A stretch of DNA of 64,000 nucleotides from Octopus bimaculoides (Eukaryota), in assembly GCF_001194135.2 (NCBI RefSeq), contig NC_068994.1, positions 27,329-91,328 of the forward strand, written 5' to 3'. The stretch's first letter is position 1, and each line of letters opens with the position of its first letter. The notes below the pieces were generated by a model, which saw nothing but the letters and a program-made list of their open reading frames with translations, made no database searches and had not been told where the DNA came from. Shown here in pieces: positions 1,879 through 43,179 of the stretch. A program made the position numbers and the translations under genes.

Positions 1879-2042
1879 CTCTTGAAATGTTTTTTTGATT
1901 AATTCTTCTCTTTCCTTTGTGACATCTTTGAAAGTACTTGACACATACAGCCGAACCTCTCTTTGTTTCTTCACCTCATGGAATTTCAACTTTTGTTTCT
2001 TTGCTTTCCATTTGATATTTCTATTTTCTTCCTCTTCTGTTT
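1879..2042 (-). CDS. Exon 14: start of DUF4062-like domain (REVRLYVSSTFKDVTKEREELIK)
   Basis: R.F.SSTF.D...ER..L motif as in NPHP3/TEP1/NWD-type proteins; gtttcag acceptor, GAG|GTAATT donor. Confidence 0.88.

Positions 2043-43179: not shown

Follow-up and report, generated by a model that had tools for sequence, protein, structure and literature searches.

An octopus STAND protein that joins a predicted lipid-anchored, lectin-type head to TIR-like, NACHT and TPR domains

Cytosolic sensing of misplaced glycans is known from galectins and from FBXO27, and it feeds autophagy. Fbs3/FBXO27 is N-myristoylated, and both its lipid anchor and its glycan binding are needed for its accumulation on ruptured lysosomes (PMC6389600). 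Hydrolysis of nicotinamide adenine dinucleotide (NAD+) by TIR-type domains is known from SARM1, from plant and bacterial immunity and, very recently, from TEP1. In the human proteins NWD1, NWD2, NPHP3 and TEP1, a DUF4062 domain adjoins a NACHT domain, and DUF4062 has been described as a family of TIR-like NAD+ hydrolases (NADases) activated by concentration or oligomerisation; the NADase of TEP1 is active, depends on Glu1008 and rises with protein concentration (bioRxiv 10.64898/2026.05.01.722283). Here we describe a stretch of 64,000 nucleotides (nt) from Octopus bimaculoides (assembly GCF_001194135.2, contig NC_068994.1, positions 27,329 to 91,328 of the forward strand; hereafter the window), and in it the gene LOC106883700, whose product carries elements of both kinds of system.

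LOC106883700 is, with near certainty, a single-copy gene and belongs to a conserved family of invertebrate STAND NTPases with ~1,900-2,000 residues, the octopus protein having ~1,940 overall. The order of its parts is equally close to certain: an MGCxxS start, a ~95-residue disordered tether, a ~430-residue all-beta domain (the N-domain), a malectin-like domain, an FBA domain and a charged linker, followed by a DUF4062 TIR-like domain, a NACHT domain, a helical domain and TPR repeats. It is a TIR-like/NACHT/TPR STAND protein with an unprecedented, probably lipid-anchored, lectin-type head, which includes a domain without known relative.

With NPHP3, NWD1, NWD2 and TEP1 the protein shares the position of DUF4062 immediately before a NACHT and a helical domain, and with NPHP3 also an NPHP3-like TPR array and a start with a myristoylation signal. 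NPHP3 is itself myristoylated. Where NPHP3 has a coiled coil and TEP1 a TROVE/vWA region, however, the octopus protein has a sensor-like head of ~900 residues (novel domain, malectin-like, FBA), and no vertebrate was found among the named matches of its family. Like Fbs3/FBXO27 it combines an FBA domain in the cytosol with a myristoylation signal at the N-terminus, but it has two extra beta domains and its output would be oligomerisation of the TIR-like/NACHT part. The lectin-type F-box proteins (FBXO2/6/17/27/44) carry a SKP1-binding F-box N-terminal to their FBA domain, whereas a profile scan gave no F-box match in the window protein or in any orthologue; unlike Fbs3/FBXO27, the octopus protein is therefore not a subunit of an SCF ubiquitin ligase. 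Animal malectin is lumenal in the endoplasmic reticulum, with a signal peptide and a C-terminal membrane anchor, whereas the octopus malectin-like domain is predicted to be cytosolic and has neither feature. In SARM1, plant TIR-NLRs and bacterial Swarozyc the proposed logic is the same, in that sensors control TIR assembly and thereby NAD+ use, but the octopus protein has a DUF4062-type domain in place of a canonical TIR, and a glycan ligand class would be new.

The gene model was rebuilt from stop-to-stop open reading frames (ORFs), splice-site inspection, Pfam collinearity of single-exon ORFs and homologue-guided tblastn. Fourteen exons on the minus strand, from position 43179 down to 1879, splice in phase into 3057 nt encoding 1019 amino acids (aa) free of stops, with GT-AG at every internal junction. 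In the order of transcription they are:

Exon 1, 43075..43179, minus strand: aa 1-35; start codon and MGCSPSS motif, then a Ser/Lys-rich disordered stretch.
Exon 2, 35791..35971, minus strand: aa 36-95/96, disordered tether; phase 0 to 1.
Exon 3, 33756..33983, minus strand: aa 96-171, first unit of the all-beta N-domain (SKWPIRCYAPLKFNINSHYGGCCSL...); found by tblastn, phase 1 to 1, donor score 7.7.
Exon 4, 30584..31648, minus strand: aa 172-526, 1065 nt, remainder of the N-domain; lies within a 479-codon open frame.
Exon 5, 25070..25231, minus strand: aa 527-580, start of the malectin-like domain (VVVAINCGGPSY).
Exon 6, 21361..21503, minus strand: aa 581-628, malectin-like (ITGTEDNFLYLTSR).
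Exon 7, 18534..18632, minus strand: aa 629-661, malectin-like (GNFILRLHC...ITVNGENISQK); 100% nt identity to O. vulgaris.
Exon 8, 16005..16304, minus strand: aa 662-761, end of the malectin-like domain, linker and start of FBA (WSQNLLQNASGE).
Exon 9, 12704..12874, minus strand: aa 762-818, FBA; His791 at the position of Fbs1 Phe177.
Exon 10, 11299..11379, minus strand: aa 819-845, FBA (VSEWYREGVCGGGFY).
Exon 11, 10657..10780, minus strand: aa 846-886, FBA (NYGPGVRGV).
Exon 12, 8833..8948, minus strand: aa 887-925, end of FBA; GKDDKYWDGHYG loop, with Tyr892/Trp893 at the positions of Fbs1 Tyr279/Trp280.
Exon 13, 2880..2997, minus strand: aa 926-964, linker predicted to be helical.
Exon 14, 1879..2042, minus strand: aa 965-1019, charged linker, then the first strand and helix of DUF4062 (REVRLYVSSTFKDVTKEREELIKKTFQE); ends at a phase-0 donor.

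The modules occupy aa 1-6 (MGCSPS), ~96-526 (the repeat-bearing N-domain), 544-697 (malectin), 751-908 (FBA) and 996-1019 (start of DUF4062). Exon 8 runs from the last part of the malectin-like domain into the first part of FBA, so that these two lectin-type modules are physically joined. Matches of Pfam profiles to single exon ORFs were collinear for FBA (profile positions 33-84, 111-158 and 152-175) and gave positions 2-23 of DUF4062. The spliced product was identical at 1019/1019 positions to the N-terminus of XP_052828708.1, the RefSeq 'uncharacterized protein LOC106883700, partial [Octopus bimaculoides]', so that the NCBI pipeline had arrived independently at the same exon structure. An earlier note on this DNA had proposed 14 exons in phase and about 1019 aa with these modules, in this order, in one gene; the count proved exact, and profiles and the RefSeq identity uphold the order. 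As exon 14 ends at a donor and not at a stop, the gene runs past the left edge of the window, and these 1019 aa make up no more than the protein's first half.

The other end of the gene was found inside the window, on the opposite strand:

Last nine coding exons and stop codon, 45676..54960, plus strand: helical region and TPR, ~437 aa, directly after the gap at 45466-45565.
Pieces of these exons found by tblastn, plus strand: 45676-45768, 47080-47283, 47731-47946, 48515-48658, 50051-50182, 51509-51634, 52340-52492, 53091-53330 and 54781-54957; the bounds are tblastn ends, not refined to splice sites.

This plus-strand piece adjoins the gene's own first exon across a gap of 100 N, and its product ends in ...VLVNSN and a stop. 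RefSeq treats it as a separate gene, LOC106883692 (437 aa), and flags LOC106883700 as 'partial'. Two of its exons, compared singly, were 94-95% identical to residues 1443-1508 and 1734-1813 of a single O. sinensis model of 1868 residues, which is the same level as that of the front half against O. vulgaris. The 'partial' O. bimaculoides protein ends in '...DEFGDT', one residue before the piece begins in O. sinensis ('...DEFGDTCNVVRETTSAIW'). The possibility that the plus-strand TPR exons belong to a head-to-head paralogue was ruled out, because these two exons match so closely the end of what is one gene in O. sinensis, and also because the 'partial' model stops exactly where the plus-strand exons begin. 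The exons at 45676-54960 are thus almost certainly part of the same gene as the 14 on the minus strand, judging from these alignments, and their position would be explained most simply if the 17.8-kb contig enclosed by the gaps at 45.5 kb and 63.3 kb had been misplaced and inverted. It is near certain that the window holds the first 1019 codons of LOC106883700 together with the last ~437, the latter on a misplaced piece. In O. vulgaris the exons for the rest of DUF4062, the Walker A motif and the helical domain follow exon 14 over ~40 kb more; their O. bimaculoides counterparts fall beyond the left edge of the window. The protein is therefore already in RefSeq, but split in two and unnamed.

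The strongest evidence for one gene is a transcript contig. A contig of 6,023 nt without introns (run SRR27666071) contains one uninterrupted ORF of 1952 codons (P0002) that encodes the whole architecture. Since the gene is rich in introns, this contig most likely derives from mRNA, and the 73% identity of P0002 to a cuttlefish protein identifies its source as a decapodiform cephalopod. All modules are joined in this transcript, which speaks against exons of separate genes. Exons 2-14 were all present in O. vulgaris, collinear and indel-free; nt identity was 96.6% over the exons and 88.5% over 200 nt of flanking intron. Identity was 93.9% for exon 2 (indel-free, flanks 89%), 98.2% for exon 3 and 95.8% for the short exon 13 (indel-free), through which the link from FBA to DUF4062 passes and which the gene models of all three octopuses (O. 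vulgaris, O. sinensis, O. bimaculoides) include. The O. vulgaris copy is stop-free, and dN/dS between the two species was 0.26.

Three assembly gaps, 7091-7190, 16817-16906 and 32054-32063, fall in introns 12, 7 and 3, respectively. The gap at 32 kb is spanned by one collinear alignment to the orthologous O. vulgaris locus (OX597827.1). The one at 16.8 kb lies between collinear O. vulgaris blocks, with exons 7 and 8 ordered correctly, and the one at 7.1 kb lies inside a 3.7-kb block of intron 12 (4092-7808) that O. vulgaris lacks and in which there are transposon fragments. Residues 106-932 and 993-1025 of the decapodiform homologue P0002 aligned to the window, and no segment was skipped. Given that the gaps are intronic, that this alignment is unbroken and that exons 2-14 have the same order and orientation in O. 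vulgaris, no exon was lost or interrupted.

The start MGCSPS fits the N-myristoylation pattern MGxxxS/T, with Cys3 available for palmitate, and MGCSPSS is a dual-acylation motif with Gly2, Cys3 and Ser6. A stop codon lies directly upstream of the exon 1 ATG, the exon ends at the donor GACATG|gtgaga in phase 0, and upstream of exon 2 the minus strand of the contig offers no other start of the MGxxxS type. Orthologues start with MGCSAS (decapodiform), MGCGTS (amphioxus), MGCGSS (Capitella), MGSGGS (Mytilus) and MGTKVS (Patiria); in the crinoid model MGAEVS is internal, and the sea-urchin models are without the motif. In the decapodiform transcript an in-frame TAA 12 nt before MGCSAS fixes the start codon. 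In line with what the earlier note had stated, neither a signal peptide nor a transmembrane helix was found in the 1019-aa product, the highest 19-residue Kyte-Doolittle mean being 1.46 and the N-terminus hydrophilic. The protein is probably cytosolic and anchored by lipid, as far as its motifs and hydropathy tell.

An older O. bimaculoides model (UniParc UPI00071DF381, 922 aa) starts instead with 'MDIGIK', from an 18-nt piece at 36093-36110 on the minus strand, 121 nt upstream of exon 2. This start was rejected: it is isolated, has an in-frame TAA just upstream and is not conserved in O. vulgaris, and it looks like a filler start of the gene predictor, not a genuine alternative N-terminus. 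The alignment to O. vulgaris loses its collinearity at 36043, ~70 nt upstream of exon 2. Of the 9.4 kb that lie further upstream in the window, only dispersed repeats had a match in the 25 kb preceding the O. vulgaris exon 2. This loss of collinearity could be due to a large insertion, a rearrangement or an assembly difference.

Inspection of the N-domain (aa ~96-526, exons 3-4) revealed no Pfam match in octopus or in five orthologues. The exon 3 unit is repeated in residues 54-108 of exon 4 (z=4.2; profile-profile hhalign E=4e-9, probability 96%), with a weaker third copy (hhalign E=1.6e-3), so that the domain has an internal repeat of ~50 residues. Within exon 4 alone no significant repeat was detected by self-BLAST or pairwise Smith-Waterman; the repeat became significant only once exon 3 was included. 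The novel repeats that had been suspected are therefore real, but they are modest, and form part of a compact all-beta domain of ~430 aa. Structures were predicted by AlphaFold2 with homologue alignments, for exon 4 alone and for the whole domain from a homologue. Exon 4 alone gave an all-beta model with a predicted local distance difference test score (pLDDT) of 85 and a predicted template-modelling score (pTM) of 0.75, and the homologue domain, including the exon 3 equivalent, was again all-beta, with pLDDT 89.8 and pTM 0.89. The confidence of the latter model argues that exon 3 belongs to one compact fold. A Foldseek search of the PDB gave no match at E<=0.001; the sole local matches were to beta domains of phage tailspikes and baseplates, over 107-171 columns and with template-modelling (TM) scores <= 0.22. 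In these models, then, the ~430 residues make up a confidently predicted fold without Pfam or PDB relative. An exhaustive HMMER search found 49 homologues of the N-domain, and every named one was from an invertebrate.

For the two lectin-type modules, both profile matches are above the Pfam cut-offs. The malectin-like domain (PF11721, aa 544-697) scored 30.2 bits on the spliced region (E=5e-7) and 24.2 bits on the whole RefSeq protein, for a gathering cut-off of 23, so that the margin is thin. When a profile of eight family members was compared with the PDB, the four malectin sequences there were found (E=3.9e-5 to 1e-2), the only other match having E=0.7, and the motifs AxNxGG and LYxTxR are present. 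To malectin itself (PF11721/CBM57; PDB 2K46, 2JWP, 6S7T, 9IKP) the similarity is remote, and we consider the assignment real at the level of sequence profiles, but remote. The FBA domain (PF04300, aa 751-908) is far clearer: it scored 109.4 bits (E=2.2e-31, cut-off 32.4) over profile positions 7-175 of 175, its pieces being collinear over four exons, and it matched the sugar-binding domain of Fbs1/FBXO2 in the PDB with E=7e-22 and 81 bits.

The residues of Fbs1 that contact chitobiose are Phe177, Tyr279, Trp280 and Lys281 (numbering as in Mizushima et al. 2004). The octopus residues aligned to them are His791, Tyr892, Trp893 and Asp894. The homology to Fbs1/FBXO2 (PDB 1UMH, 1UMI, 2E33, 2RJ2) is clear and the Tyr-Trp pair of the glycan loop is shared, but the octopus FBA domain is internal to a 1,940-residue protein and differs at the first and last of these positions. 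In all family members except sea urchin, Tyr-Trp is kept and the Phe177 position is His, Tyr or Phe.

Inside the window only positions 2-23 of the 82 of the DUF4062 profile (PF13271) are covered, with 17.8-18.1 bits, below the cut-off of 24.7; with the RefSeq continuation beyond the window the score was 45.1 bits. That continuation also contains the NACHT domain (33.8 bits, cut-off 26.7), with the Walker A motif 'ILGESGCGKS'. A full DUF4062, NACHT and TPR were found as well in the continuation of the O. vulgaris locus and in the decapodiform transcript. The TPR repeats scored 112 bits for TPR_12 and 51 bits for TPR_10 in the protein that maps to 47080-54957 on the plus strand (P0089). Membership of the STAND/NACHT NTPases, which the earlier note had read from ~25 DUF4062 residues, is in this way confirmed at the sequence level, from sequence outside the span available to that note. 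The note also called the protein NLR-like; unlike those of animal NLRs (NACHT-LRR), the C-terminal repeats are TPR and not LRR in every member of the family. DUF4062 does precede the NTPase as had been stated, but it is more than that, being a TIR-like NADase family.

The TIR-like crystal chain of TEP1 (11gz_A) aligned to the DUF4062 domain of the decapodiform protein with E=3.9e-17, the offset of the chain being set by Arg908, Arg954 and Arg976 all falling on Arg. The catalytic Glu1008 of TEP1 then aligns to the Glu of 'SVTQLE', in a region that lies outside the window; both octopuses share this motif, O. vulgaris in its DNA and O. bimaculoides in its RefSeq protein. Because DUF4062 is a TIR-like NADase family, this domain is, by analogy, the likely effector of the octopus protein.

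A mechanism can be proposed from the combination of the FBXO27 precedent, the DUF4062 NADase literature and the conserved TEP1 Glu. Myristoylation of Gly2 and palmitoylation of Cys3 would hold the protein on the cytosolic face of membranes, and the three beta-sandwich modules would form a ligand-binding head, in which the FBA and malectin-like parts, by homology, would recognise glycans. Glycans would enter the cytosol only upon rupture of lysosomes, phagosomes or endosomes, or with incoming glycoproteins or microbes. Binding of clustered glycans, or of another clustered ligand, would relieve autoinhibition by the TPR/NACHT part and lead to nucleotide-dependent oligomerisation, which would bring TIR-like domains into proximity, for NAD+ hydrolysis or the nucleation of a signalling assembly, and so for a response to damage or infection. 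The recruitment of Fbs3/FBXO27 to ruptured lysosomes and endosomes is the precedent for such a proposal (PMC6389600). We infer every step of it beyond the presence of the domains, and it is tentatively that we favour, on these analogies, a lipid-tethered, glycan-triggered NACHT/TIR-like switch as a whole. The more specific version, a conserved invertebrate sensor of breached endomembranes in which a lipid tether keeps the protein on their cytosolic side, three modules of carbohydrate-binding type, one with a fold so far without PDB counterpart, make NACHT oligomerisation depend on newly exposed lumenal or microbial glycans and DUF4062 then consumes NAD+, is possible but doubtful.

Several points weigh against a glycan-triggered switch. 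The malectin match is weak (24-30 bits), and the family-profile alignment is too gapped to place the Glc2-binding aromatic and Asp residues safely. The FBA pocket is partly substituted, with His791 for Phe177 and Asp894 for Lys281, and FBXO44, which shares this fold, does not bind glycans. The sensor of most STAND proteins is their C-terminal repeat array; here too the TPR array could be the sensor, the lectin-type head serving for targeting instead. At the positions of TEP1 Arg908 and Arg976 the octopus protein has Lys. Blastn and tblastn did not find exon 1 in the 25 kb of O. vulgaris that precede its exon 2. Finally, among the human proteins only TEP1 showed NADase activity in vitro, and NPHP3, NWD1 and NWD2 did not (bioRxiv 10.64898/2026.05.01.722283).

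Rather than an immune sensor, the protein might be an NPHP3-like trafficking or ciliary scaffold, in which the myristoyl group serves UNC119-type cargo delivery, as it does in NPHP3 of vertebrates, the TIR-like domain is silent and the beta-sandwich modules bind proteins. The back half does share the plan of DUF4062, NACHT and NPHP3-type TPR, with partial matches to TPR_NPHP3, NPHP3_N and NPHP3_hel; some pipelines label members 'NPHP3', and NPHP3 itself is inactive as an NADase in vitro. The family appears to have one or very few copies and no lineage-specific expansion, and it is under purifying selection (the dN/dS of 0.26 noted above), which is seen more typically in housekeeping genes than in immune genes engaged in an arms race. 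However, TPR_NPHP3 scored 65-82 bits, below its cut-off of 100, and NPHP3_N and NPHP3_hel were below their cut-offs as well. The N-terminus of NPHP3 is a coiled coil without lectin-type domains, the catalytic Glu is kept across the octopus family, and the lack of a named vertebrate, arthropod or nematode match would be odd for a core ciliary component. We consider such a scaffold unlikely.

It is also conceivable that the TPR array senses a peptide or protein cue, and that the lectin-type head tethers the activated oligomer to exposed glycoproteins or glycolipids, much as a lysophagy adaptor would, with or without NAD+ hydrolysis. This would be the usual STAND layout, in which C-terminal repeats sense and autoinhibit, as has been described for APAF-1 (bioRxiv 10.64898/2026.05.01.722283); the plus-strand exons of the window encode a well-conserved TPR_12/TPR_10 array, and the FBA domain of Fbs proteins is a substrate-recruiting module (PMC6389600). 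On the other hand, no ubiquitin-ligase module, LC3-interacting region (LIR) or other adaptor module stands beside the head, and three ligand-binding modules before a TIR-like domain resemble 'integrated sensor domain' layouts. Layouts of that kind occur in other STAND proteins. Sensing by the TPR array has, in our judgement, a small chance of being correct.

The last alternative, a chimeric or artefactual model that unites lectin-domain and DUF4062 exons of separate genes, or a decaying pseudogene, is very improbable and effectively excluded: an older O. bimaculoides model (P0076) does end by reading through the exon 12 donor to a stop 60 codons on, the link from exon 12 to 14 hangs on a short and weakly scored exon 13, and the assembly around the gene is disturbed, but exon 13 is conserved indel-free and present in three octopus gene models, one decapodiform transcript covers everything, six other phylum-level lineages (amphioxus, mussel, annelid, starfish, crinoid, sea urchin) have the same collinear protein, and a stop-free sequence with that dN/dS does not fit a pseudogene.

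Collinear proteins of ~1,900-2,000 residues were found in Branchiostoma, Mytilus, Patiria, Anneissia, Strongylocentrotus and decapodiform cephalopods, together with a 994-residue model in Capitella and fragments in Solemya. They are labelled 'uncharacterized', 'FBA domain-containing', 'TPR repeat-containing protein DDB_G0287407-like' or, wrongly, 'NPHP3'. No vertebrate, arthropod or nematode was found among the named matches, many matches carrying no name. When full-length members served as queries of a profile search, matches to TPR proteins swamped the result, and a word-index protein search with exon 4, or with a rough concatenate of the malectin, FBA and DUF4062 parts, came back empty, which is a limit of that method, as identical and near-identical proteins are in the collection. 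Full-text searches by domain combination and by six gene identifiers found no paper on the family, which is undescribed in the literature searched. The combination of domains had been thought to be without description: no characterised orthologue of the same architecture was found in the literature search, but the combination is predicted in databases, for O. bimaculoides and at least 4 other phyla.

The O. vulgaris annotation of the gene, CAI9733595.1 (1126 aa), ends in a spurious tail and omits five exons that the O. vulgaris genome itself carries, intact and conserved. Four of these correspond to exons 3, 6, 8 and 10, and the other carries the catalytic-Glu motif 'LEIQHAV':

Exons omitted from CAI9733595.1, O. 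vulgaris locus excerpt (OX597827.1): 27406-27651, 38381-38524, 45814-46116, 50343-50438 and 79477-79599.

Transposon remains were observed in two introns. In the block at 4092-7808 they are a mariner-type transposase fragment at 4586-5011 on the minus strand (PF01359, E=1e-24), a reverse-transcriptase fragment at 5557-5967 on the minus strand and zinc-knuckle-like ORFs near 6519-6942. In intron 4, retroelement remains consist of reverse-transcriptase (PF00078, E=3e-10) and zf-RVT fragments at 28148-28555 and 29630-30139 on the plus strand. A dispersed repeat of ~400-500 nt occurs at 9283-10316, 42446-42875 and 56186-56866, and has many copies in the O. vulgaris locus as well. At 60739-61948 on the plus strand two long ORFs, of 201 and 223 aa, overlap. 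They have no Pfam match, the other strand likewise carries long ORFs there, and they may reflect composition or an unclassified repeat. No tRNA gene and no Rfam family at gathering score was found across the whole window.

The finding exposes a local error of assembly and annotation that divides an octopus gene in two, and the N-domain, as a predicted fold without Pfam or PDB relative, is of independent interest. If the proposed mechanism is true, damage sensing of the galectin/FBXO27 type would be joined to NAD+ signalling of the TIR type in one polypeptide. It would also provide a tractable candidate class of ligands for DUF4062-NACHT proteins, the human ones included.

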